A DNA stretch of 64,000 bases, from the NCBI RefSeq assembly GCF_036321535.1, contig NC_087458.1, positions 3,162,001 through 3,226,000 on the forward strand, read 5' to 3'. The DNA is from Camelus dromedarius. Its lineage: Eukaryota. This document shows, one piece after another, positions 3,401 through 53,331 of the stretch. Both the position numbers and the translations under genes were made by a program. Every line of letters begins with the position of its first letter. Positions within the stretch are counted from its first letter, which is position 1. Below the pieces are notes generated by a model, which had not been told where the DNA came from, made no database searches, and saw only the letters and a program-made list of their open reading frames with translations.

Positions 3401-6400
3401 TTATCTGTTCCCTTTACCCTGGATACCACTGAAATCTACAAGAGATGCTTCCGTCACTTCCCCAGGACTCCCCCCCTCCCCCTGCTCATGCCAAGGCCCC
3501 TCCAGCTTCTCACCCTAAGAGTGGTTTTGAATTCGGGGCCAGGGCCCACTGGGAGGGTCCCATGTGGGTGAACCTCATAGCGGTGCAGAGTGGACTCACT
3601 GCATGGACACCAAGTCAGGAAGTACATGGTCACAGCCATGACACAGACGCAGGGGCACATGATCAGCACACAGACATGGATTCAGGGGAGGCAAGGCCAG
3701 CACATGGATAAAGAGATGGGGGTACACAGAGAAGACAGAAACGGGACATGACATAGACTTGGCATATACTTCATGACCACATCCCATTTTCCCTCACCCG
3801 AGCTCCAATCCCTAGGGCACAGCAAAGCCCTACGCCTAGGAGGTATAGGTATACCCATGCCCAGGGAAGTAAGATGTTTAAAAGAGAAATTTCAGCATGA
3901 GTGGGACTGAGGGCAAAAAGATGGAGGAGCCCCAGGGGTTTGGTGTTCAGGAACGCTGAAGCACATGGAGGGAGAGGGAGGAAATGGAGTATGAATCTGA
4001 GGTCAGGATGGAGTCCCAGCGGGAAGCTAGGCCGTACCTAGCAAATAGGAGGTGAGGCTCATATTGGATGTAGGCTGAGGTCTGGACTGTGTTGTCTTGA
4101 AGGGTTCCGTTTCTCTCCAGGCTGTTGCTGTAGGGTCAGGGGGAGAGGCTCATGTCCCAGCCCTGTCTCAGGCACCCCTCTCTGGAGTAAAGGAGCCAGT
4201 GCTGTTTCCACCCCTCCACCCCCTACCTCCCCACTGCCAAGACCCAGCAGGAGAGGGCCAGGAGGAAATTCTCCTTGTCCTCACCTGGCAGCAGTTAGCC
4301 TCACAAGGACCTGGCTCAGGAGGAAGGAGCAGCTAAACTCAAACTCCAGAAGAAAGGTCACCTGAGGGCAAGGGACATGGGGTCACAGGAGATTTCTTTT
4401 CATGGGGCCGCTACAGAGGAAAAGGAGTCATTGTGTGCCTCCTCCCCTAAACTGCCAGGCCCCACAGATTCCAGCCNNNNNNNNNNNNNNNNNNNNNNNN
4501 NNNNNNNNNNNNNNNNNNNNNNNNNNNNNNNNNNNNNNNNNNNNNNNNNNNNNNNNNNNNNNNNNNNNNNNNNNNNNNNNNNNNNNNNNNNNNNNNNNNN
4601 NNNNNNNNNNNNNNNNNNNNNNNNNNNNNNNNNNNNNNNNNNNNNNNNNNNNNNNNNNTTTCTTTCTTCTTGAAATAGTCCCCTGGGCTATACAGTAGAA
4701 ACTTGTCACTTAACTATTTTATACACCGTAGTTAGCATCTGCACATCTCCAACTCCTAATTTATCCCTTCCACCTCCCTTTCCCTCTGGTAACCATAAAT
4801 TTGCTTCCCCTGTCAGAGCCCCTTTCTCATCCCGGGCCCCAGCTCACCTTGCCTCCAGACCGGAAGACAGGATGCCCCACGCTGCAGAGTCGGGAGTGAG
4901 GGGAAGGGGCTGCACATTCCACCTTTACTGCGCTGTCCCTCTGAGAGCAGAGCACCGAGGGTGGAGGCTGGAGCTGGGGCTGCCACTGCTCTCCTGCCTG
5001 CAGCTTCTAAATGCAGCCTTTCCCCAGAGCCCCTCACAGCCAACACCCCAGTCTTCTTCCTCCTCCTTCCCCGACTCCTCCCCAGCTCCCTCCCGCAAGG
5101 GCACCTGAGGAGTGAAGCTGGACAGATGGAGGTTTCTAGAAAAGCTGAGGCTCAGGCTCGTGTTGTAGGCGTTTTCCTCCCTGTTCTCCAGAGCTGCTGA
5201 CACGAGCACCTTCCGCCGACCACCCCGAACCACAAAGGGCTCCTTCCTAGGAGGGGCGGGTAAAGGAGGGCCCAGACTTGAGGGGTGCCAGAAGCCTCAC
5301 TTCTCTTTTCCTGGGTGAGAATCAACCCTCCGTCTCCCTTCAGGCCCCCTCTGGTCTGTCTCAGGTCACCCTGGTTTGGCCAGGTCATGTCCATCCCACC
5401 TGGAGCCTCTGATGTCCATACTGGCTCGAAGTGCCAGATCTGTGACACATTCATTGTCGGGGCCGCAGTCCTTTGAGAAGGGGACCTAGAGGGGAGAGAA
5501 GGGCTGAGGGCTGAGAGGAAGACAAGGAGAAGGAACGGGACTGGAGGAGAAGTGGAAAGACAAGAGGGGGTGCCCAGGTCAGATTCTGCTGTCGTCCCAT
5601 GTCTCCTCCCTCTTTAAGCTTGAATGCACTGAGAAGGGCAGCGTTGGGACCCAGGGGCAGGGCAGGGCTTGGCACTGCTGACCAGCTTTCGTATGAAGGT
5701 GGGTGAGCCCTCTTCCAGCACAGGTCCTGGCTTTGTGGTGTTGTCCAAAGCAAAGGTCACAGTCAAGACGACTGGCCGGAGGTAATCTGATGTGTCCTGA
5801 GAGAAACCAGGGTCAAGGATCACGCAAAGCCGCGGTTAGGGATACAACCCAGGCCACCGGCTGAATGCGATCATGAGGGTGATCATTTACTGAGCATTCT
5901 CCGTGTGCTTGGCACTGTCCTCAGGTTTTATGAAGACTATTACATTTGCTGGGAGGGTATAGCTCAGTAGTAGAGTGCACACTTAGCATGCATGAGGTCT
6001 TGGGTTCAATCCTCAGTAATTCCACTTAAATAACTAAATAAACAAATAAATAAATAACCCTAATTACCTCCCCCTCAAAAGACTATGACATTTAATTCTA
6101 AGACACCTCCTATGACACAGTCATCTTCACTATCCCCCCTTTCCAGGCAGGGAAACTAAGGCTTGCAGGTTATGTGGCTTGCCGGAATTCACAGGTAGTA
6201 CATGGCAGAGCTGCGCTTCAAACCCGGACTAGCCTCGCTCCCAGGTTTGGACTTTCTCACTTTCCTGGCTTTGGCTTTCTTGCCAGTCCAGCAGAAACCT
6301 CCCCTCTGATCCAGCCTTCCTCTCACCCCCAGGCCCTGATGCAAAGCAGTTCCTGCCCACTCCTCACCTGCACGTGGAAGTGAAGCTGCTCACAAGTGAC

Positions 6401-9400: not shown

Positions 9401-12400
9401 GGGTCTCGCTGCCGCCGGAGGTAGTGACCAAGGACCTGGGGTCAGAGATCAACATGGGGTCTGTTGGCTGTGCGGAGTGAGTGTCAGAGCTGGTACAGAT
9501 CCCAGCCAACTGAAGAGAAGAAAGGGAAACACGGCTGATGTCTGGGAAGTGGTTAATGCCTGTGTTCCTCAGGTTCCCAGTCCTCAGTGTCGCTACCCCC
9601 ACCCGCTGCCGTCCTTTCAGATCCAGAGCTGATTCTCACAGCTATCCCGTAGCGTGTCACTCTTCCAGCCTCACAGGCCTTCAGTGCTGCGGGGAGCTCC
9701 TCTCCATCATGTGATTCTCCATCAGTGACAACCACCAGTAGCCTGGCAGCCTCTGGTCGGCCCCCACGGGACTGACTGAATCCTTCTGTGCTAAGAAGAG
9801 AGAGGACTGAAGTACAATGAGATGTATGCAGACAGATACACGCCCACACAGTACTTAACACTGCCAGCCATCCACTGAGGTCAGGCCTCTTGCCTGTAGC
9901 CCATCTCTCCAACTGTCTAGCGCAGAGAAAGGCACGGAGTGCAAGCTCAAATGTCTGAACATCATAGAACATGTGGAGCAGTGTATCATCAATCCAAAGA
10001 AGTTTAAATCCACACATTCATAGATTCAATCGGCAAATATTGTATTTGAAAGGACAAATATTAAGGGAATGTAGAATAGAGAAGAATGGCCAGGCCAGGG
10101 AAGTCTTCTGGGAGACGAGTTTTGTCACGTTTGGAGAATGAGCTAGGACATGAGTGGCGGAGAACCTGAGGGCCAAGGTCAAAGTGGGATGGGGGTGTAC
10201 AGACAGACAGAATTCCGTCTGCAGAGAGCAAGAAGCGGAAATGTGGACAGACACAGACACAGACACTGTGGAAACGCAGGGAGAAGGAGCGCAGGGGCAG
10301 CCCGCCTCGCCTCTCCCACCCACCGTCCCGGCGCAGACAAAGATAAGCTTGCAGGACACCTTGGGACATACACACTGCACTCCAAACCCGCCTCTAACCC
10401 TTCTAGACCCTCCCACTCGCCTCCCACTCGCCTCCCACGCTCCCCCTCCCAGTGCCTCACCAGGCCACCGTGATTGCTTCAGCAGTCTTTGTTTCTCGCC
10501 CCTCTCGTCGGCTCAGGTTCCTTGCTGCTCTCACCACTTCTTCTTTGGTTCGGAAATCCCCCAGGGACCACTCGTGTACAGAGCTCTCTCCATACTGTAC
10601 CAGCCCGACCTGAGAATGCAGTGTGCACGTTGGAATGGGATGTGCGGGGGGCGCAGGGGGTGGGGGTGGCAGAAGAAGGTATGTGAGGGAGGGGAGATGG
10701 GCACCTGGATACTACTGAAGCTACTGTCCACATCTTCCTCCTCTCTCCCTGTCTCTCCCCCTCCAAGTCCATCTGTATTGCCTTCTCTTACCTGTATCTG
10801 CTCCGGGTCAATAAACAATCTCCCTACCAGTCTTCGTAGGAAGGTCTGAACTTCAGACCAGGGATAGATGCTGTTGGAGCCATCCAAGACAATGACGACA
10901 TCCATGTAGGTGGGGCAGCCTAGGAGGAGGGGCGTGGTGATGAGGAACAGAGGGGTAGGGGATACTGGGCATGGGGGTGACAGGGGAAGAGGTCACAGGA
11001 AGGCACGTTCAATTCAAACATTTATTAGGCACTTCTTACATGCAAGGAAGGTAGTGTGCCAGGTCCTGGGTAAATACAGAAATAGGTAAAAGAAACAAAC
11101 AAACAAACAAAAACAAAGCGTAAATACAGGACAGAAATAGACTCATAGACAGAGAATACAGACTTGTGGTTGCCAGGGGGGGTGGAGGGTGGGAAGGGAT
11201 AGACTGGGATTTCAAAATTGTAGAATAGATAAACAAGATTACACTGTATAGCACAGGGAAATATATACAAAATGTTATGATAACTCACAGAGAAAAAAAT
11301 GTGACAATGAGTGTGTATATGTCTATGAATGACTGAAAAATAGTGCTGAACACTGGAATTTGACACAACATTGTAAAATGATTATAAATCAATAAAAAAT
11401 GTTAAAAAAAAAAAGAAATAGGTAAAAGAGAAGATGAGCATACATACAATTTACTAAAAAACAGAGAAGAAGGAATTAAGTGCTAGGTAGAAACATAGCA
11501 CCACTCTGCTGCTGGAGAACAAAAGAGGGTCAATTCTGCTGGTGGGGAAGCAAAGGAGGCAGCAACTGAGAAGATACTGAAGACTGGAGGTGCTGGAGGA
11601 GCGGGGAATATGAGGAAAGGCATCTGGGTGGAGAACACTTTAAACAAAGGGAGGTAGAGGTATAAAGATAGATGACACACAGGAGAATGGCGAGGTGAAG
11701 GCTACAGACGAGGTGCAGGGTATGGAGGGACACAGGTGGAGTTGGTTAAATCAGTTCGTGGAGTCTTGATACCCTCGTAAAGAGTCTGAATTCTAATCTG
11801 TTAGGAAACATGGAGCTTTTGCAGGCACATTAGGTAGCAATGAGGATAGCCATGCAGGCCCCCCGCCAAGCATCACACCCTGCAGCCCCATCTTTTCCCC
11901 ACCCTGCACCCTGTTCTGGGAACCGAGTCCTCAGTCCCTGCTCCTGGCTCACGTTGCGCGGTGGGTGCCAGACTTCCCTGGGGCTGAAACGAAGCATCTA
12001 CGTGGGTGCAGATCCCAGAACTGAAGACAGAGGAGCCGCAAGCACGCGACCAGAGAGGGGCACAAGCCTGGGGATGGGTGGGGGGAAACAGTTACTCCCA
12101 GGCTTGGGAGGGCACCCTCAGAACATGCTCCTGGTCAAAGGAGCCATTGAGTCCACTCCCCGAGAGTCCCCTCCTTGCTGTCTAGGTTTAACTCCTTGAC
12201 GGCTACACATAGACCAGTTTCCCTTATCATGCCACCCTTTTCTCTACCACGAACTTTCAGAAACCCCGCCACCACCCTTTCCTTAGCTTACCATGAATCC
12301 CCCGTCACCATCTGTCTCTAGTAGTGACATCCCCAGGTGCATATTCACAGCAGGACGAGATGAATTTCCTAGTGGGTAGTCACCTGGTTGGAGGGGAGTG

Positions 12401-16250: not shown

Positions 16251-19200
16251 TCAAGGCTTGAGTCGTAGCCAAGGGCAGATTAGGGTGAGAATAGACAGGA
16301 TGGAGGACACAAGGCCACAAAACCCCACAATCCCAGGGCCACAGTGCCAGAGGCCTAGCTTGTCCAGTGGAATGAAGAGATCGCAGGCATTTCTGACCAC
16401 ATCGAGCAGAAGAGGGGGATGACCTCGAAGGACCCGAGCCAGGAGCAGGACTCGGAGTCGAAGCTTCAGAGCTACTTGGGGCAGGCTTCCTCCTGGAGTT
16501 CCTGGACTCCCAGCTCCCCCAGTTTCAATTCCTCCTGGGACTCCTCCTCCAGAGCCCTTCAGTCGCCGGCTACAAGCTGAAGACTCTTGTTCCATCAGGA
16601 GGCGAATCTCATAAGCATCACGGCTCAAATTCATGATGAGGGAAAACAGATAATACCTGGGATACACAGGGCAGTAGAGTCGGTAAGGGTACGTATACCT
16701 ACTTACATCCAACAGAACACTTACACTTCTTTTTTCCCCCCATAGTGCAAAAGGATTACACATTAGAATACCAGAAGGGAATGTTATTGCCCACTCTCAC
16801 AAATGGCCTTCCACCTTTCTGTAACTAATGGGATTTATGTGCACCTTAAGATCCTCGCTTAAAATTCATGAGTCATGAAATATTCCAAGATCAACCTCAA
16901 ATTTCACTTTTCCACTTGGCAACCCATTAGTGCACACACATTCAACTTGAACTATAACAATGCAAATTTATTTTAAAAGAACAGCTTCAGTTGTTTCAAA
17001 GACTCAGATGTATAGACCATTTAAATCCAATCCTTCCATTAAAAGAAAAAAAAAAAGCTAAGCCCACCTTGCCAAATGAGTTGGATTATAAATTCCTTAA
17101 GAACAGTCTATGTCTTTTTTATTTTTAATCCATTCTGACAACAGTGGTCTGTATTCAATATAATTGTCCTAACTCTAAAACATATCCTGACTCTGACCAC
17201 ATCTATCTTTTATACTCCACCACCACAGTCTGAGCCACCATCATCTCTTCCTTGAACTACTACTTTAGTCTTTTAACTGGTTTCTCCACAGCCACACTTG
17301 CTCCCCACTCCCAACAATCTAATCTCATACAGTAGCTGGCATAAACATAAATCACATCATTATTCCCTTTCTTAAAACTCTCCAAGGTTTCCTCCCTACC
17401 ACATTTAGAATAAACTACTTTAGGCAGGCATATAGAACTCAACATCTGACTCTGTCTCTCTAACTTCATCTTGTACCATGCTTTCCCTTAATCGCTATGC
17501 TCCAAACACATTAGGTTCTTTCTGTATTTTGATCCTATTAAGCTCGTTTCTGTTTTAGAAACTTTATACCACATACTCCCTCAACCTGAAATATTCTCCC
17601 TCCAAAATCTTCTCATGGCTGGTTCTTCCTTGCACTTCAAGTTTGAGCTTAAATGTCACACTTCAACGTGATACACACACACACACACACAACTGAATAC
17701 TACTCAGCCATAAAAAAGAATGAAATAATGTCATCTGCAGCAACATGATGAACCTAGAGAGCTTATCACACTAAGCGAAGTAAGCCAGAGAAAGACAAGT
17801 ATCATATGATATCACTTATATGTGGGATCTAAAATATGACACAAATGAACTTATTTACAAAACAGAAATAGATTCACAGAAAACAAACTGATAGTTACCA
17901 AAGGAGAGGGGTGTGGGGGAGGGCCATATTAGGAGTATGAGATTAGCAGATATAAACTACTGTATATAAAATAAACAACGAGGTCCTACTGTATAGCACA
18001 GGGAACTATATTCAGTATCTTGTAATATACCATAATGGAAAAGAACATGAAAAAGAAAAAAATTTATATATATATCTCTGAATCACTTTGCTATACACCA
18101 GAAACTAACAAAACATTGTAAATCAACTATATTTCAATTAAAATAAATAAATAAATAAATAAATATTATCTCTTTAGGGATGTATTCTCCGACCTCCCAA
18201 TTCTAAAGTAGCGAGCCATTTACTGTCTACCACATGACTTTTTTAACTTCCTGCATTGCATTTACCACTCTCTGTCATTTTTCTCATTTATTGTTTCTTT
18301 GCTCTTACTGTTACAATGTAAGCACCACTGGAGCAGGGATCTTGTTTGTCTTTAGCACTGTGTCTAGACCAGTGCTCGGCACATACTAAGAGCTCTATAA
18401 ATATTTATTGAATAAAATGAATAAACATGGCATATAAACCCTTCTGGGGAGTTGTTTCTCCATACCACTCCAGCCATGCCTCCACTCCCACCCCTCATAC
18501 ATCCTAAGCCATGTTATAAATATAAATGATAAAGATGAAGAGAAAAGCAAGACATAAATGTAGAAGGAAAGATGCTAATGTAAAATGACAAAGAATCATT
18601 GGAGAACAAAAAACCAATACAGATGATATGTATACAGATCATTTAACTCCCAAATCATGATTCTTTCCACTTTCATCACCAGCCTGCTCCTCAGTCCAAG
18701 CCAACATCATCTCTTGACCACATTAGGGCATCTCCTCCTCTTTTGCTCTACAGCAATCCATTTTCCACACTACAGCATGAGAGATCTTTTTTGAACACAA
18801 TTTGAATTATGTCACATCTCTGCTCAGAACCCACTGTACTTAGGATAAAATTTAAACAAAAAAAAAAACCCTTACCATTGCCTACAAGGCTTTGCATGAA
18901 TGACCTGGACCCTGTCTGCCTCTCCAGTTTGAACTTTTAGCCTTAAGTCCATCACACTGGTTTTCTTTCTATTTCTCTAATTCCATGAAGTCTTTCTTGG
19001 CTCAGTCCTTAAAGTGTGCTATTTTCTGTTTGGGAAGATCTTCTCTGCTACTGTTTGCTTTGTATAACTTCTACTCAGACTTCAAGTCTGAAACAAATTT
19101 AATTTTCTCAAAGAATTCTTCCTTGACTTTTCAATCTAAATTAGTTCCCCGTGTTATATATCTCATAACATCGTGTACTTCCCCACAAATATTTGGTTTG

Positions 19201-21239
19201 GTGATTATTTGTCTTAATCCCTGACTCCTCCACTAGACTAGAAGCTTCATGAGAGCAGGAACCATAACTGTTTGGCCCTTTGCTGTATTCCCTGGCTCAC
19301 AGCAAGAACCTACTAAATATTTTTAGAATGAATGAATGAGCAGGCAATGAGGGGCATAACCTGTGGTACAGACAGACGCAGAATTAAAGAAATAAAATTA
19401 ATATCTAATCTTGCCCGATCTTAGTCATTCATCATGGAAGAGCATCTGTCTTCCATCTTCCCCTATTCATTATTCTCTGATAGTTTAAGATCTAAATGAA
19501 GATTGGAAGCCAAGTGATTAAGATGTGTATATTCTCAGAGAAGCCCCTGAGAGACTGTTCTTTCATAAAAGGCCAGCTATGCAGTATGGAGAATACAAAA
19601 GGNNNNNNNNNNNNNNNNNNNNNNNNNNNNNNNNNNNNNNNNNNNNNNNNNNNNNNNNNNNNNNNNNNNNNNNNNNNNNNNNNNNNNNNNNNNNNNNNNN
19701 NNNNNNNNNNNNNNNNNNNNNNNNNNNNNNNNNNNNNNNNNNNNNNNNNNNNNNNNNNNNNNNNNNNNNNNNNNNNNNNNNNCTCGTTTGGCTGACTCAA
19801 GGGCATCTGCCGAGTTACCGAGGCGTAGGACTTGCGGAGGTTAGCAAAGAAAAGCAAGGATTTGGGAAAGCAGAGAGGCAAATAGAGAGCAAGACACAGA
19901 GAAAGAGAGAGCGCAAGAGGGTGAAAGTCGAGCAAGTGATAAAAAACAATAACAAACAATTTTAAGTGCAGAAAGAGTTCATTCTATTTTACTTCAAGAT
20001 TTAATCAATTTGTGTCCCAGGTTAGTTTTCTCAAATTTGCCCCATTCTTTCTAATCCTTCATTACTCTTACCCCTGCTCTCTTGTCCGGGTCAGGAGGCA
20101 TGCAGAGAGTAAGTGCAGAGGAAATGAGGGAGAAGAACCGGCAGAGAAGGTCAAAAACAGGACGGAGGGACTAAGGAAGAAAAGCTGGGGATGGAGGAAG
20201 TGTTGGATTAATAAAAGGAAAGGCACAGTTACTTACGCTTTCTTCCTAGGCTCAGATGACCCTCCAGTTGTCGAATCTGTTTCTGTAACTCAGGACTGGC
20301 CCCATGTTTCTGTAGAGCATGGCCAAGAAGGGAGCAAGCATACTGGGCAGCCCTGGAGGAGAGAGAGGACAGGTAAGGTAAGGTGGAGGCCTCCCTAACC
20401 TCCCTCTCAAAAGTGTCCTCCAAAAGGCGAGTCCTCCCTGGACCCCTCCTTTTCCCCGTTTGAGACATTTCCCTCTCCTCCTCTTCATGCCCACATCTCA
20501 CCGTTTCTCCTCCAGGCCAGGGGAAGAGAAAGACGTAAGGATTAAAAAAAAAAGGAGCCTAGAAGGGGGTGGGGAGCACTCTCTAGAACTGAGGAAACGA
20601 GAGATTTGACAATGACGAGGACTGAAGGGGATAATGAAGGCGGCAGGGGGTCCATCACAAGCACATCAGTGTGAGCATCTTTGTGATATGTGAGGGAGTG
20701 GGGGATAGCTGGAGGGCAGATTATTCTTCAGAATAGGTGGACTAAGATTTTCAAGGCCCTTGAGATGAATCGAGACTAAAAGCCAGGGCGGGGAGACAGA
20801 GGAGTTCGCGGGTGACAGAAGGCTGAGGGGACAGGGAAACTTCGGAGCGCCTCGTCAGCCCTGGGGACAGAGTCCAGGTCGCTATCCGCCACGGGGCGAA
20901 CGCTCCTCGTCCCACCGGTGCCCAGTGAGGAAACTGTCGGTCTCATGTCAACACGCAACCCTGAGCGGCCTCCCCGCTGGCCCACTCGTGCCTCAGTTTT
21001 CCCATCTTTCCCGCGGGCAGAAACGAATCATGGCCTCATAGCCGGCTCAACAGAGAGCCTCGCGTTCCGTCCGGGACCTCGTACCCTGAGTTGACCCTTT
21101 TTGACCCCCGTAGTGGGAACCTGACCTCGCCTCACGAGGCTCTTCCCCTGCCCGCCCTCCCCCAACTCCTCTTCGGGCCGCACCTACACAGCCGCTCCCG
21201 GGCCTGGCTCTGAGCGCTGAAGCGGACCCAGGCGTCCAT
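16251..21239 (-). CDS. PEX11B: Peroxisomal biogenesis factor 11 beta, 4 coding exons (exon 3 mostly in N-gap)
   Basis: Exon 1 21184-21239 ([18 protein letters not shown]). Exon 2 20237-20352 ([38 protein letters not shown]). Exon 3 starts at 19830 ([15 protein letters not shown]) and runs into gap 19603-19782. Exon 4 16251-16656 ([20 protein letters not shown]...PWLRLKP*). Confidence 0.97.
17180..18430 (+). mobile_element. Ancient L2 fragment interrupted by a younger L1 3' end (17691-18164)
   Basis: L2-like CTTCAAGTTTGAGCTTAAATGTCAC resumes after an L1 3' segment (TACTCAGCCATAAAAAAGAATGAAATAATG...TATAGCACAGGGAACTAT...(AAAT)n). L2 tail AAATATTTATTGAATAAAATGAAT. Confidence 0.7.
19603..19782. 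other. Assembly gap (180 N), covers most of PEX11B exon 3
   Basis: Run of N. Confidence 1.
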
Positions 21240-21650
21240 GACAGCGGCGGCCCCGGCTCCGCAGATCTGCTCCCGCCCCACTTCCCGCCCCTAGTCACGC
21301 CTCCCGGACGACCCGACGGTGCCGCGCGAGGGACAAACATCATCAGGAAAGAAAGCGCCTGCAGCCGGCCCCTGAAGCGGCATTTCAGAACGAGCAGCAC
21401 TTGTCTCTGGGCCTACACCTGCGTGTTTTTGCGCGCGTCTCCATCAGCGCGTCCTTTTGTCAGATGATCTCTATTTCTTAAGCCCGCCTGCGGAGGCACA
21501 TTTTCCTTTAAATAGTCTGGACCAAGGGCGGGGCTTGCAGGATGCGGCCGGGGCCAGAAGGTGCCGCAGTGCTCTCGCCGGGGCCTCTAGGATAGCGTTC
21601 CCTCCACCCTGGAGCGCGTTCAACAGAACACCCCAGTGAGTTCACACACT
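20800..21650. promoter_or_regulatory. CpG island; PEX11B / GNRHR2 head-to-head promoter
   Basis: High CpG density and GC boxes (CCCGCCCC, GGGGCGGG). The two ATGs (21239 -, 21931 +) are about 690 nt apart. Confidence 0.8.
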
Positions 21651-21930
21651 GACTCACTCGCACGCTCCAGCCGAATCCAGGACTCTGGGCGCTAAAGAAG
21701 TCAATGGAAGCAGAAGCCTACACCGGATTCCTGTTCCCTGCAGGACCCTGACAGTTGGACAGGTGACTTCCAGAATACGGATGGAGTCTCCAGAGACAGA
21801 CGCTTTAGTGGACGAAATTCGCCAAACAACCAACTTAAGATCCTAAAAGGGAGAGAGAACAATCAGCGGACGCAGCTAATCTCTTCAAACCCACACTTTA
21901 TCCCCTCACCCCTTGCCTTTCCAGGTCACC

Positions 21931-24900
21931 ATGTCTGCAGGAAACGGCACCCCTTCGGGGTCAGCAGCAGGGGAGGTCTGGGCGGGGTCAGGAGTAGAAG
22001 TGGAGGGCTCAGAGCTGCCCACCTTCTCAGTTGCAGCCAAGGTCCGAGTGGGAGTGACCGTTGTGCTGTTTATTTCTTCGGCTGGAGGGAACCTGGCTGT
22101 GCTGTGGTCAGTGACACGGCCGCAACCTAGCCAGCTCCGCCCCTCTCCGGTACGACGACTCTTTGCTCATTTAGCAGCTGCCGACTTACTGGTCACTTTT
22201 GTGGTTATGCCTCTAGATGCCACCTGGAATATCACTGTTCAGTGGCTGGCCGGGGATATCGCATGTCGGACACTCATGTTCCTGAAACTAATGGCTATGT
22301 ATGCCGCAGCTTTCCTGCCTGTGGTCATTGGGCTCGACCGCCAGGCAGCCGTACTCCACCCGCTTGGACCCCGCTCAACTGGAGGGAAACTTCTGGGGGC
22401 AGCCTGGGGACTTAGTTTCCTGCTTGCCTTGCCCCAGGTGAGTGACTTGCCGGCACTTACGGCTAGACTCAACAAGAATTTGGGTATACAACATGAGCCT
22501 TCGGTTTCAAGGGGTGTGCGTGGCCGCGGTCACCATTAATCCTCAGCGGGGGAGCCTCTGCTATCTCTTTTGCAAGTTACCATCATCGAGTGTTAATTTG
22601 TATTTTTGTAAAGAGCCTTTGATTTTACTACACTTGACTTCCACCTTTTTGCATCCTCCCTCCCAACCTTTTTCAGATGCAGAACTCTAGGGCAGGGAGG
22701 AAACATATATGGGAAGAAGACAGTTAAGTCAGTGACTTTGGACAAAACTTTGTGGTATTCATTCATCAATCCAAAAAATAATGTGCATCCCCTAGGTACA
22801 ATCAAAAGTTCTATCAAGGATAGAGCGACAAAGTCTTGCCTCCAAGAAATTTTTAAACTAGTGCAGAGTCAAATTAATATGCAATTAGAACACAGTGTGT
22901 AGTCGAGCGTTAATCTAAGCATAAGGAGCTAAAGAACAACGGAGATGTCTGACCCACTCTTGGACAGTTAGGGAAAGCTTCCTGACTTCCCAGAGACGTT
23001 AAAAGTTGATTCTTGGAAGTCAGACAAGTTAAAGCAGGACTGCTGGGGAGGGTAGAGGGTAGACAATCTCACAGTGGTTGCAGCTCAAGATGAGGGCTAG
23101 AGAATGGTGAATAATGAACCCTGGGGGGAATGAAGAACGAGATCACAAATATTAGGCTTGTAGTTTATCCTGAGGGCATTGGAGACTCTAAAGTAAAAGG
23201 TAGAGAGTGACAATTAGATTTGCCATTTTTTACTCTAACTTTATGGTGGGTGTCAGAACCGGGGGAAAGGGGGAGCATCTGAACTTGAGGACCAGTTAAT
23301 CAAATCTCAATACTGAAAATGAACTAGAAATCTAGAAAAAAGCAATTCTTTCAAAACCAAAACCACTACCACTATCTGGGAGGAGGGAGTAAAGCAGCAT
23401 CTCTGAGACAAGGATTAGGGTTATGTCAGGACGGAGTCTATAATTTCAGCCTCTGGAATAATACATTCTAGAGCCAGATTTAAGATTTGACCCTTAAATC
23501 CTTAAATATTATAAATTAACTATCAGTTAGTCTGACCGTAGTTCTAAAGTAGGAAGTATTGCTTCCAACAGTATGTTGCAAACAGGACCTCTGCTACCCC
23601 AAGTTTTAAAAAGCAGCCTGTTGCCTCCATGCAAAAGGAGTTACAGTTGAATTTATATGAAGCGAATTTTAGATGTGAGCTGGGAGTTAGGAAGAAGCCT
23701 GTTTTTGACGTTTGCTTGTTTTACTTTTGCTTTTTGAGTCTAGGCTCTACCACAACTAGCTGTATGACTGGCTAAATCCCTTGAAATATATAGGCCACAA
23801 GATAATGGAATAGCAAATGAATTTCATCCTTTCTTGCAGTCTGAAAACCTGACAATAGTGCAACCTCCATTTGCTTCAACAGCAACCTGGTAACATCATG
23901 ATTGAGGTTCAAAAGGTGCTATTTTGGGTTCCACATTAGCATCCTCCTATGTAAATTCTGCACTGCCCTTATGTTGCACTTAAAATATTAGTGTCAGTAA
24001 AAAAAAACTTTTTTGTTAGTGTGGTGAAGGGAACATTCTTGTAGTTAGAAACTATTTTTATAGACTCGAGTTTCCAAGTTATCAGAAGTAGCTGAAAAGG
24101 TTTCCACAGTCGATGGTAAATTGCGTATCAGATAAGAAAAGAAGAGGCAGAAGTGGGGCCATGGACCAAAATGTGAGTCCAGGAGCCCTGCCTATTTTAA
24201 ACTCCTTCTCACAAGGTGTCAAGTATTTCTAGGTGTACTATAACCCGCCCCCCCCCCAAAACAAAACCCTCAAAATATATGGACTCAAGATAGGGGAAGA
24301 GGAAAAACCACTCCCCAACTGACTTAGAATCGCCTGATCCTAAGTCCAAGCAGTTCATTTAATTGCATGTCTGTGGCTGATACTATTTACCTTTCCTAAA
24401 AGTCCCTCATGTTTGCTGAAATCACTTTCCAAAATGCCTTATATCTAAGAATCTGATACCTACAAAGCTTGCCTTCTATCAAACTAATAGTGACTCAATC
24501 CACCTTACCTGAACTGAGGTAGTCAACCTGAAGCTCTCAACTGAAAAATACTCCCTACTGACTCAAAGCAAAACCCCAGCAGTTTGCCAAAAAGGGGAAG
24601 GGGCAGCCAACAGCATTTGGAAAATGTTAGATTTTATTTAACATTGTTTCACCATCATAGTTACTGTACATATGACTATTACTAAAGGTCACTTTACAGA
24701 GTGGCTGCAAAATGGCCTGAAACTTTAGCAGCACCTGTTTTATACAAGATTTCTTGTTTTCACAGAATCAATCACACACATCATGAAAATCATTTCAGCT
24801 CAAAAGGTTGGTGAGGTGGTAGATACCCTTTTATGAAGTTCAATGTTAGAATAGTATTTGAAAAGGCAAGGTTTTTTTTTTCCTTTTTGTTCTAAATGTA

Positions 24901-26285
24901 GGTACTGGGGATTGAACCCAGGTCCTCGTGCATGGTAAGCATATGTGCTACCTCTGAGCTGTACCCACCCCTTGAGAAGACAGGATTCTTTAAATTCCGG
25001 ATTTAACAAACATAGCCTAAGGGGAAGAGGGATTTTCGAGATACATTTCTACACTTTTAAATATGGCACCATGGATGTACAATTACTCGGCACTGCAGAG
25101 AATTAAGAATGAACTGGAAGGAGATACTGCTGAACTGGTGGGTAGGCTGGTGGGGAGGGTAAGGGGAACCAGCTCTAACAGTCCCCAACTCCATTCTAGC
25201 TATTCCTGTTCCATACTGTCCGCCGAGNNNNNNNNNNNNNNNNNNNNNNNNNNNNNNNNNNNNNNNNNNNNNNNNNNNNNNNNNNNNNNNNNNNNNNNNN
25301 NNNNNNNNNNNNNNNNNNNNNNNNNNNNNNNNNNNNNNNNNNNNNNNNNNNNNNNNNNNNNNNNNNNNNNNNNNNNNNNNNNNNNNNNNNNACAAGAAAG
25401 GGGAACCATGGTGAGACCCCAGACCCCAGGCCCTAACCCATACCCTACTGCTTCTAACCTCATTTATTTGATAGTGATCTATCAAACCAAAAGTGAAATA
25501 CCACCCATATCTCTAGCACCTGATGCTACACATAATGTTATTGAATGCCTTCAATTATAACTTCATTCTCTGAAGTTGAGTTAGCTGGGCAAGAATAAGG
25601 AGAAAAGGGATCAGTATTCTCCTGTTAGACACCAGCACGTCTTCAAATAGACTTGGCAGCTTCATGTAACACAGCATCTTAATCGAAACCTTTTTTTCCC
25701 AGCATGTCTATCATAATCCCTGGGGGGAGGAGAGTGTATCGTCCTAGGCTGGGAAGGGAAAGGCGGCATGCAGCATTTTCTTCCTTGTAGAGGGGGAGAG
25801 CTCTATTTATGCCCATTCATCAACTCAGGAGCTGAGTGGTTCTGAATTTGAGTGTGTTTTCTAAATTCCCAGCCTCTGCCGGTGAATTTGCCCTCCGCCG
25901 CTCCTTAGACAATCGTCCCCGTGTTCGTCTTCGGGCCCTGCGACTGGCCCTGCTTGTCCTGCTGACCTTCATCCTCTGCTGGACACCTTATTACCTGCTA
26001 GGTCTCTGGTACTGGTTCTCTCCCACCATGCTAAATGAAGTGCCTCCCAGCCTCAGCCACATCCTTTTCCTCTTTGGCCTCCTCAATGCTCCTCTGGATC
26101 CTCTCCTCTATGGGGCCTTCACCCTTGGCTGCCGAAGAGGGCATCAAGAACTTAGTATAGACTCCTCCAGAGAAGGAGGATCTGGAAGAAAGCCCCCGCA
26201 GGAGATTCAAGCCCTTAGACAGATGGAAATACAAGCAAATGTGGCAGCAAAAGAGGCAGGAGAAACAAAAGAGACATTTCTATAA
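21931..26285 (+). CDS. GNRHR2: Type II GnRH receptor, 3 coding exons, open in all visible sequence (376 aa if the gap length is correct)
   Basis: Exon 1 21931-22437 (MSAGNGT...LALPQ, 169 codons). Exon 2 25200-25410 (LFLFHTVRR-gap 25228-25391-TRKGNH). Exon 3 25873-26285 (SAGEFALRR...ETKETFL*). Lengths 507+211+413=1131 nt. Class A GPCR motifs LAAAD, DRQ, CWTPYY, DPLLY, ECL3 PPS motif and a retained C-terminal tail. Confidence 0.93.
24633..24638 (-). terminator. Candidate distal RBM8A poly(A) signal (AATAAA) inside GNRHR2 intron 1
   Basis: Minus strand ...CAATGTTAAATAAAATC. A further AATAAA lies at 25463-25468. Confidence 0.45.
24872..24971 (-). mobile_element. tRNA-derived SINE
   Basis: T-rich tail followed by the reverse complement of a tRNA-like head (GGGGATTGAACCCAGG...TGAGCTGTACCC). 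Confidence 0.75.
25228..25391. other. Assembly gap (164 N) inside GNRHR2 exon 2
   Basis: Run of N. Confidence 1.
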
Positions 26286-26582
26286 CATCCATTTGCTCAG
26301 GACAGAGTACACAGGAACAGAATAATTATTCTTTAGTATCACAAGAATATCTGACTTCTACCCTGCTCTCTTAGCTTCCAAGAAAAAGAAATACTGAGCA
26401 GTCTCTACTTTGACCCCAGCTGAGACTTGAGACTATGTCTACTGTAGAAACTCACACAGAATTCAGTCCCTGGGAGAAGTATCTTCACAGTGACCCACAC
26501 TACCTTACTGTAAATAGTGCTTCAGAGCTTGCAATGTCAGAACAGGAAAGTAATTTTAAATGTAGAAAACAAAAATGGGACA

Positions 26583-26588
26583 TTTATT
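26583..26588 (-). terminator. Proximal RBM8A poly(A) signal (AATAAA)
   Basis: TTTATT on + strand about 140 nt past the RBM8A stop. Confidence 0.65.
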
Positions 26589-26627: not shown

Positions 26628-26633
26628 ATTAAA
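26628..26633 (+). terminator. Candidate GNRHR2 poly(A) signal (ATTAAA)
   Basis: First canonical-type hexamer I found on + strand downstream of the GNRHR2 stop (26285). Confidence 0.45.
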
Positions 26634-26729: not shown

Positions 26730-28520
<1,791 letters not shown>

Positions 28521-32772: not shown

Positions 32773-32903
32773 NNNNNNNNNNNNNNNNNNNNNNNNNNNN
32801 NNNNNNNNNNNNNNNNNNNNNNNNNNNNNNNNNNNNNNNNNNNNNNNNNNNNNNNNNNNNNNNNNNNNNNNNNNNNNNNNNNNNNNNNNNNNNNNNNNNN
32901 NNN
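32773..32903. other. Assembly gap (131 N) over the LIX1L stop codon
   Basis: Run of N. Confidence 1.
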
Positions 32904-49720
<16,817 letters not shown>

Positions 49721-51840: not shown

Positions 51841-53331
51841 TCAGCGGCCGGGCTCCCCAGGCCCGCCTAGACTCTGGAAGCCCCCTAGCAGGCGGATCTG
51901 CTCAGTCTGCATGGAGTGGCGCCTCACCAACTTGCGCTTGGTCCTGGGAGAGCCTGGCGCCCCCGCCTGGGGAGGGGCGGGCAGCGAAGGCGCCCGACCT
52001 CCGGGTTGGGGGCGAATGTCGGGGATGGGAGGGTGGGGGCTGACATTGAGCGGGGGCAGGAAACCAGGCCGCGTTTGCGCGATGTGGTCCAGGAGCAACG
52101 TCCCCGAGCCCCTCCGCTCCAGCAGCCCTGGACTCCGCCTCCGCCCGCTGAGTGGAGACACAGCCCCAGGCAGACTCTCTTGGGACTGGCGCGGGGAGGG
52201 AGCCGAGCCAGCTGGAGGGAGGCTCAGCGGGGAGGCGCTGTATCGGCGGCGCTCCAGGGACAAGCGGCTGCACTCCGGCGAGTCGGGGCAAAGATTTCCG
52301 GGGGTATCGAGCTCCACCGGCTCCATGCGGCTCAGTTTCTGTCTCAGCCCGGAAGGAGGGCCAGACTCCTGAGCTTCTGGCGCGGTGTTTCGGCGCGAGA
52401 GAGGACCCCCACCGGTCACTTTCTCCGCCCACGGGGGCGGGTCCTCTGGGCCTTCAGTGCTGTGACGTCTGGAAAGACGCGGTCGACCTGTCAGGGTCAG
52501 GCCGTTGAATTCGGCGGTCAGGCGCTCGATCCCCGGCCTCCCTTCGGCGGGTGGGACTGGTTGAGGAGGCGCAACTAGGCCCCAGGGCTCGGAGTTGAGC
52601 CTTTTGAGTGGTTTTGGAGGATGACGGGGTGGTTTGGGGAGTGGCTCAGAAGGGGAGGGGTCATCGGGGGGTTTAGGAAGAGGGAATTCAAATACGTCCC
52701 GCTTCTCCTCTTCTTCCTGGGCGCGAGGGGATAGCAACCCCCGTCCTCCTCCTCCTGCAGTCTGCAGCTGGATTTCCGAAGGCGACGTGCAGACCCCTGG
52801 GCTAGGAGGAGCGGGAGCTGGGTCCTCTACCCCCGGGGACGGTGGGGAATTGAGATACTGCCGGGTCTTCTTGGTGCCCGAGGGCGAGGTGTCGGTGGTG
52901 ATGATGATGACCTCCGTGCCTTTGGCCTTACAGGCGTCCAGCAGCGTGGCAAGGGTCTCGCGATCCCCGCGGTCCAGGGCGTGGACAAGCGCCGAGGCGC
53001 CCGCGTGATCTCGGACTGAGGGGTCTGCTCCATGGGCAAGAAGCAGAGAGGCCACGGCGGCGCCCCCACCGCCCGCGCAAGCGTGCATGAGGGCCGTGCG
53101 TCCTAGGCGATCTGCGATGTTGGGGTCCGCGCCTTGCTCCAGGAGGTAGCGTACCATGCGCGCCTTGTTCTGGGGGTCGTCGTAGCGGGCCCGACAGGCC
53201 GCCATTAGCGCAGTCTCCCCTTGGGCATCACCCTCATTCACGTAGGCGCCCCCCTCCAGAAGCAAACGGGCCAAGCGTAGCTTACCCTGACCCACGGCCC
53301 GAAGAAGAGCGTGGCCCTCGGTGTGCAGCAT
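51841..53331 (-). CDS. ANKRD34A: Ankyrin repeat domain 34A, single coding exon, 496 aa
   Basis: Uninterrupted ORF MLHTEGHALLRAVGQGKLRLARLLLEGGAYVN... with N-terminal ankyrin repeats and a Pro/Ser-rich C-terminus ending GGPGEPGR. Acceptor of the coding exon at 53446 (tttttttgcag|GG). Syntenic position between LIX1L and POLR3GL. Confidence 0.96.
   Translation of the reverse strand: MLHTEGHALLRAVGQGKLRLARLLLEGGAYVNEGDAQGETALMAACRARYDDPQNKARMVRYLLEQGADPNIADRLGRTALMHACAGGGGAAVASLLLAHGADPSVRDHAGASALVHALDRGDRETLATLLDACKAKGTEVIIITTDTSPSGTKKTRQYLNSPPSPGVEDPAPAPPSPGVCTSPSEIQLQTAGGGGRGLLSPRAQEEEEKRDVFEFPLPKPPDDPSPSEPLPKPPRHPPKPLKRLNSEPWGLVAPPQPVPPAEGRPGIERLTAEFNGLTLTGRPRLSRRHSTEGPEDPPPWAEKVTGGGPLSRRNTAPEAQESGPPSGLRQKLSRMEPVELDTPGNLCPDSPECSRLSLERRRYSASPLSLPPAGSAPSPRQSQESLPGAVSPLSGRRRSPGLLERRGSGTLLLDHIAQTRPGFLPPLNVSPHPPIPDIRPQPGGRAPSLPAPPQAGAPGSPRTKRKLVRRHSMQTEQIRLLGGFQSLGGPGEPGR

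Follow-up and report, generated by a model that had tools for sequence, protein, structure and literature searches.

The window, by which we mean the whole 64,000-nucleotide stretch of DNA analysed here, contains at 21931-26285 on the plus strand a type II gonadotropin-releasing hormone (GnRH) receptor gene, GNRHR2, in three coding exons of 507, 211 and 413 nt. We consider it likely that the explanation as a whole is a camel GNRHR2, a three-exon class A G protein-coupled receptor (GPCR) gene whose visible codons are intact and constrained, and which would encode a receptor protein engaged in GnRH2 signalling. Over those visible codons the GNRHR2 protein is under purifying selection in the camelid lineage, and judged from its sequence the camel gene is very probably a live one. 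Mammals have lost GNRHR2 time and again, which makes it a textbook example of gene death; to our knowledge few livestock species possess a working copy, and the pig is the only one in which it has been studied. The novelty of the present gene is limited, since RefSeq already annotates a GNRHR2 protein in all camelids and the functional question was flagged earlier in the literature. As the gene model is already in RefSeq, the gain lies in confirmation and a selection test rather than in discovery, and what our analysis adds is a check of the gap length in exon 2, a residue audit and the selection tests.

All features of the gene are read on the plus strand. Exon 1 (21931-22437, 507 nt) begins with the ATG at 21931, holds an open frame of 169 codons spanning the N-terminus and the transmembrane segments (TM) from TM1 to the start of TM4, and ends at a GTGAGT donor from 22438. 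Intron 1 (22438-25199, 2762 nt, GT...AG) is 97.3% identical to intron 1 of the alpaca. Exon 2 (25200-25410, 211 nt) lies between a TTCTAG acceptor and a GTGAGA donor and is visible only at its ends (28 and 19 nt), the remainder being covered by a run of N letters (N-run). These ends of exon 2 translate as in orthologues, and the masked part comprises the rest of TM4, extracellular loop (ECL) 2, TM5 and the start of intracellular loop (ICL) 3. Following intron 2 (25411-25872, 462 nt, GTGAGA...CCCAG, 96.8% identical to the alpaca), exon 3 (25873-26285, 413 nt including the TAA at 26283-26285) opens after its CCCAG acceptor and encodes the end of ICL3, TM6, ECL3 with its PPS motif, TM7 with DPLLY and the cytoplasmic tail in an open frame. 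The coding sum of 1131 nt equals 376 codons plus a stop, and with the N-run counted at its stated length the reading frame is maintained through it. Canonical splice sites, freedom from stops in exons 1 and 3 and the sum of 1131 nt had all been claimed in an earlier note made from this DNA, and all are borne out. A tRNA-derived short interspersed element (GGGATTGAACCCAGG core) is also seen after a T-run in intron 1, at about 24860-24975, and fits an artiodactyl or camelid genome.

The products of both fully visible exons fall within the GnRH receptors. Exon 1 matches the Pfam 7tm_1 profile at 1.4e-18 (profile positions 1-120) and exon 3 at 1.1e-8 (positions 197-260), both well outside what chance would give, the middle of the domain being masked by the N-run. 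For each exon the best relatives of solved structure are GnRH receptors, with the non-type-I chain 9u4y_R (7.6e-45 for exon 1, 2e-36 for exon 3) standing well above the human type I chains 7br3 and 9u4w (111 bits for type I versus 156 for 9u4y_R, and 86-89 versus 128). Every motif that the earlier note had listed was recovered, in the translated sequence as well as when it was aligned with GnRH receptors of known structure: D-A-T-W-N, Cys and Lys in TM3, DRQ, CWTPYY, WYWF, PPS and DPLLY. Among these are the type II hallmarks of an Asp at TM2 position 2.50 combined with the Asp of the TM7 DPxxY motif, DRQ, and the ECL3 PPS. The type I receptor (human GNRHR, 7br3 and 9u4w) belongs to the same GPCR subfamily, shares the ligand-contact residues of TM2 and TM3 (D-x-x-W-N and the TM3 Lys), and is coupled to Gq/11, as we propose that camel GNRHR2 may be. 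It differs in having Asn in TM2 (LANLL) where the camel has Asp (AADLL), DRS rather than DRQ, SDP rather than PPS in ECL3, and no C-terminal tail, whereas the camel frame goes on for some 50 residues after the tail-less type I chain has ended.

A full-library HMMER search with exon 1 returned the marsupial ‘Type II GnRH receptor’ of the opossum as the best full-length representative (82%), and a second search placed the sequence in a 90% cluster with the GNRHR2 proteins of alpaca, three camel species, pig and warthog. The exon 1 product matches alpaca GNRHR2 at 169 of 170 positions. When the visible residues were compared with Camelus dromedarius XP_010998010.1 (376 aa), all 178 before and all 143 after the mask were identical (321/321), and this identity indicates that the host genome is that of a camel, most likely the dromedary. 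The earlier guess of a camelid genome is thereby confirmed, and its identification of the gene as GNRHR2 is upheld by the best matches, the exon structure and synteny. Among the visible residues there is a single difference (R254H) to the models of C. ferus and C. bactrianus; relative to the alpaca there are four substitutions plus an indel of one Glu, and relative to the cloned pig GnRHR2 there are 26 replacements (295/321 identical, or 92%).

The camelid RefSeq models (C. dromedarius XP_010998010.1, C. ferus XP_006172806.1 and Vicugna pacos XP_006212503.3) represent the same gene as the GNRHR2 of the window. Newer RefSeq camel models are 405 aa long and carry the flag ‘LOW QUALITY PROTEIN’, and an older alpaca model has 406 aa. 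In the 405-aa camel models the frame changes three codons ahead of the stop and 29 extra residues follow, where the window reads ...ETKETFL followed by the stop. Within 26262-26375 of the window, the 405- and 406-aa models leave the frame at the AAAGAGACA stretch and run for 32 further codons in another frame, which is open in the window. The switch may be either a real 2-nt polymorphism or an annotation artefact. Since this late change of frame is all that sets the flagged models apart from the window, we rejected the flag as a sign of disruption. In a 2017 review, alpaca and three camels are listed with records of both GNRH2 and GNRHR2; the function of each gene in alpaca is entered as ‘?’, and the functionality of the camelid genes is called unclear (PMC5732264).

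The N-run in exon 2 (25228-25391) is 164 letters long and covers 55 codons (1 + 164 nt). It is one of four N-runs of irregular length in the window, the others being at 4477-4658 (182), 19603-19782 (180) and 32773-32904 (132). In the alpaca locus (L001) exactly 164 nt separate the two flanks of exon 2 that are visible in the camel, and exon 2 measures 211 nt in alpaca, pig, star-nosed mole and sloth. The N-run at 19603-19782, which falls in the neighbouring gene PEX11B, likewise equals the alpaca spacing of 180 nt. From the matching alpaca spacing and the 211-nt exon 2 of relatives it follows that the N-runs keep their true length, and that the flanks are continuous with the frame kept. A test of the length set in advance thus came out in favour of continuous, in-frame flanks, and we rejected the notion of a gap of unknown length. 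In the two of four cases checked against alpaca, the N-runs of the window behave as length-true masks over conserved exon sequence, unlike placeholder gaps. Over the 55 masked residues, public camel models are equal in length, free of X and identical to one another, although they may derive from the same assembly. The earlier claim of an intact receptor holds for all 321 visible codons, which are open and under purifying selection, and for the conserved length of the mask, while 55 codons lie behind it.

The closest well-studied counterpart is the pig GnRHR2 (NP_001001639.1/AAS68622.1), a cloned receptor of 377 aa that has been expressed and studied experimentally, whereas the camel receptor is known from its sequence. 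The pig exons measure 510, 211 and 413 nt against 507, 211 and 413 nt in the camel; those of alpaca and sloth are 510/211/413 and those of the mole 507/211/404. Camel and pig have the same neighbouring genes at similar spacing (616 bp in pig versus 692 bp in camel on the upstream side, and 423 bp versus about 445 bp downstream), together with the same type II motifs and a tail. The camel receptor has one Glu fewer in its N-terminal ectodomain (hence 376 aa), and the 26 visible replacements lie mostly in the tail and ICL3.

Several measures indicate that the visible protein has been conserved by selection. In a residue audit against 22 other full-length mammalian GNRHR2 proteins, restricted to columns at which no more than one of those proteins deviates from the rest, the camel protein departed at 0 of 190 near-invariant visible columns, while the pig departed at 1, the green monkey at 5 and the orangutan at 12. 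Pairwise ratios of replacement to synonymous divergence (dN/dS, by NG86 over the 321 visible codons) for the camel gene were 0.17 with both pig and sloth and 0.18 with mole, the pair of pig and sloth giving 0.16. The comparison with pig had been proposed in the earlier note, where a ratio near 1 was named as the value that would speak against an intact gene, and 0.17 is far from it. Between camel and pig, dS is 0.22 and dN 0.04, as compared with a divergence of 0.16 in alignable intron. Because dS is at least as high as intron divergence, the constraint acts at the level of the protein rather than on the DNA as a whole or on overlapping non-coding functions.

We also fitted a GY94 branch model (our own script) to camel, alpaca, pig, deer, mole and sloth. 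The background omega was 0.25 and that of the camelid clade (stem plus both tips) was 0.38, for which omega = 1 was rejected (2dlnL = 7.4, p = 0.006). Between camel and alpaca, 65 of the 3226 intron sites that align are different (2.0%), and there are 10 intron indels. With these introns as a neutral yardstick, which gives the camel-alpaca comparison back some of its power, 14.2 replacements would be expected at the 706 replacement sites and only 4 were found, a rate 0.28 of that in introns (Poisson p = 0.0015, Fisher p = 0.006). Synonymous changes were close to expectation (4 versus 5.2), and the only coding indel between the two species is an in-frame one of 3 nt, with no frameshifting indels. 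Outgroup comparison leaves a single apparent replacement on the camel branch, a Gln to Pro change at tail residue 348.

The locus also gives a signal in RNA. Exon 1 is fully contained (0.96-1.00 of sampled words) in two documented reproductive-system RNA-seq runs, and also in about 12 probable RNA runs from several studies. Intron 1 reaches 0.96-0.99 in genome runs and 0.23-0.46 in the four exon-1 RNA runs that are listed for the intron; the remaining ten exon-1 RNA runs (X4 and nine others) are absent from the intron list, and we read this as lower shares on the assumption that the list is ranked by share. Such enrichment of exon over intron is what one would see at a locus that is transcribed and whose RNA is spliced at least in part, and carries in itself no strand or junction information. 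A separate contig of 1049 nt from Logan (P0299), belonging to another mammal, encodes a 159-aa product with 89% identity to camel exon 3 that is preceded by exon-2-type residues (…TRKGND), and is a spliced exon 2-3 GNRHR2 transcript of that mammal, assembled from public sequencing data.

A useful control is provided by the red deer (Cervus elaphus hippelaphus, L002:3001-7600), whose locus has the same flanking genes and exon layout and 89-90% nucleotide identity to camel exons 1 and 3. The deer gene carries 1-nt insertions in both exon 1 and exon 3 as well as an in-frame stop, as a ruminant pseudogene should, and none of these lesions is found in the visible part of the camel gene. The red deer gene nevertheless has an annotated product, a ‘hypothetical protein’ of 276 aa (OWK04722.1), whose model changes frame and leaves out exon 2. 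According to the 2017 review the mammalian gene has been lost many times, GNRHR2 of cattle and sheep are pseudogenes, and broken copies are still transcribed in humans and sheep (PMC5732264). In the same review GnRHR2 of the common shrew and a ground squirrel are tabled as disrupted (PMC5732264), whereas current NCBI/UniProt models for Sorex araneus (P0183) and Ictidomys tridecemlineatus (P0171) are full length at 376 aa. This discrepancy may reflect low-coverage assemblies behind the older calls, or lesions hidden in the newer models. A 376-aa GNRHR2 model also exists for a ruminant, the musk deer Moschus moschiferus (P0297).

A number of observations weigh against a live receptor gene, and most of them bear on the idea that camel GNRHR2 is recently dead or dying, through a lesion in the 55 masked codons, regulatory loss or loss of the GNRH2 ligand, in parallel with the independent deaths in ruminants, carnivores, horse and humans. 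The repeated loss of the gene among mammals (PMC5732264) and the broken red deer locus lend this idea plausibility, as does the fact that 55 of 376 codons are hidden, given that a stop or a compensating pair of indels inside the mask would be compatible with the window. When the branch test was confined to the camel and alpaca tips, omega was 0.52 and neutrality was not rejected (p = 0.36), a non-significant outcome for crown camelids that we attribute to there being only eight substitutions between the two species. The branch of the deer pseudogene also rejects omega = 1 (omega 0.55, p = 0.02), which implies that gene death part-way along a branch escapes a clade-level test. In addition, when spliced camel products were sought in Logan by means of the peptide of exon 3, the only camel-like match was an unspliced 149-aa open reading frame (ORF) from a Bactrian-like sample, and the newer camel models bear the low-quality flag mentioned above. 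Set against these points, there is not one damaging change in 321 codons and no departure at the 190 conserved columns; the deficit of camel-alpaca replacements relative to introns argues for constraint after the two lineages split; and the flagged models show a receptor body without a lesion, differing by the late frame switch only. Furthermore, a length-true N-run means no net frameshift, and a survey of 118 cetartiodactyl genomes reports no GNRH2 defect in camelids (PMC9144646). On balance we regard a dead or dying gene as unlikely, though as the most serious of the competing explanations.

It could also be that the conserved role of the locus is non-coding, that the receptor protein is irrelevant and that the transcript is a side product, or a regulator, of two neighbouring elements, the divergent promoter of PEX11B and the convergent 3' end of RBM8A, the genes that flank GNRHR2 on either side. 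Exon 1 starts less than 700 bp from the PEX11B start and close to the CpG-rich promoter shared by both genes, so the RNA signal could stem from divergent promoter transcription; the PEX11B/RBM8A arrangement is moreover kept in all species, and broken human and sheep genes are still transcribed (PMC5732264). A non-coding role, however, predicts equal constraint on all sites, when in fact synonymous sites diverge at least as fast as introns and replacement sites far more slowly, and in deer, where the protein is dispensable, the same locus gathers frameshifts and stops. This makes a purely non-coding role very improbable in our judgement. Less credible still is an assembly artefact, in which the two sides of the N-run would not be truly adjacent or in frame and the three-exon model would be illusory. 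The length of an N-run might be a mere estimate, but the exact 164-nt spacing in alpaca, the 211-nt exon 2 in four other species, the equally matching N-run in PEX11B and flanking introns that are collinear with alpaca at 97% all speak otherwise, and with the alpaca spacing, exon 2 lengths and intron collinearity as tests this reading was rejected.

If camel GNRHR2 is live as we suppose, then by orthology with the cloned pig and monkey receptors the protein would be made, would bind the decapeptide GnRH2, and would signal through Gq/11 to phospholipase C, and from there to inositol trisphosphate (IP3)/Ca2+ and protein kinase C (PKC). On the same basis its cytoplasmic tail is expected to confer rapid desensitisation and internalisation, unlike the tail-less type I receptor. 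As for the ligand, the GNRH2 gene lies outside the window. The survey of 118 cetartiodactyl genomes found GNRH2 defects in whales and hippo, where the cleavage motif is missing, and an extended signal peptide in Bovinae; camelid defects are not mentioned (PMC9144646). Camelids may differ from ruminants in keeping a working GnRH2-GNRHR2 pair that acts in reproduction, a proposal we put forward tentatively and with somewhat more doubt than confidence.

What such a pair might do can be approached through other mammals. Expression data for pig GnRHR2 come mostly from testis cells and the male reproductive tract, and work in musk shrew and marmoset concerns mating behaviour and feeding (PMC5732264). 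Analogy with these three species suggests testicular steroid output, mating behaviour tied to energy status, or modification of the luteinising hormone (LH) surge as candidate roles, and the pig data would direct attention to the testis no less than to the ovulatory axis. An ovulatory role for camel GNRHR2 would be a new claim without support from the pig model, and the link to ovulation induced by beta-NGF (beta nerve growth factor) is pure conjecture. In particular, that the receptor might modify the GnRH-dependent LH surge which beta-NGF triggers in induced ovulators is the least likely version and seems highly doubtful. The results move camelids from ‘gene present, function unknown’, as in the 2017 review, to a GNRHR2 that is ‘probably functional’. 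Camelids thereby become a second large-animal model, and studies of the reproductive physiology of induced ovulators could reasonably turn to them.

PEX11B (16251-21239, minus strand) is arranged head-to-head with GNRHR2; its last coding exon is at about 16251-16760 (Pfam PEX11, 3.5e-22) and its start codon at 21239. Between the two start codons, which are 692 bp apart, lies a shared divergent promoter and 5' untranslated region (21240-21930) with a GC content of 0.58 and a CpG observed/expected ratio of 0.8. On the other side the RBM8A coding region (26730-28233, minus strand) is placed tail-to-tail about 445 bp past the GNRHR2 stop, with approximate limits projected from the alpaca gene call by blastn; it is supported by that gene call, which contains an RRM_1 domain, and by RBM8A-like minus-strand ORFs in the window. 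A pattern scan found one candidate poly(A) signal for GNRHR2, the ATTAAA at 26628-26633 (plus strand), which is the only one within 1.1 kb of the stop, and a candidate for RBM8A is the AATAAA at 26583-26588 on the minus strand. The opposing positions of these candidates imply a short tail-to-tail overlap of the GNRHR2 and RBM8A 3' ends. PEX11B and RBM8A also flank the gene in the alpaca, pig, mole, sloth and red deer loci. In pig 616 bp lie between the start codons of PEX11B and GNRHR2 and the gap to RBM8A is 423 bp, and the antisense PEX11B/RBM8A arrangement has been reported for all species (PMC5732264).

Further out, the window holds an exon of ITGA10 (9553-10014, minus strand) with an integrin VWA domain, an exon of LIX1L (38317-38799, minus strand) with a LIX1 domain, and a single-exon ANKRD34A-like ORF (51841-53331, minus strand) of 496 aa with ankyrin repeats. 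Taken with PEX11B, RBM8A and POLR3GL, these genes make up the conserved mammalian gene order around GNRHR2.

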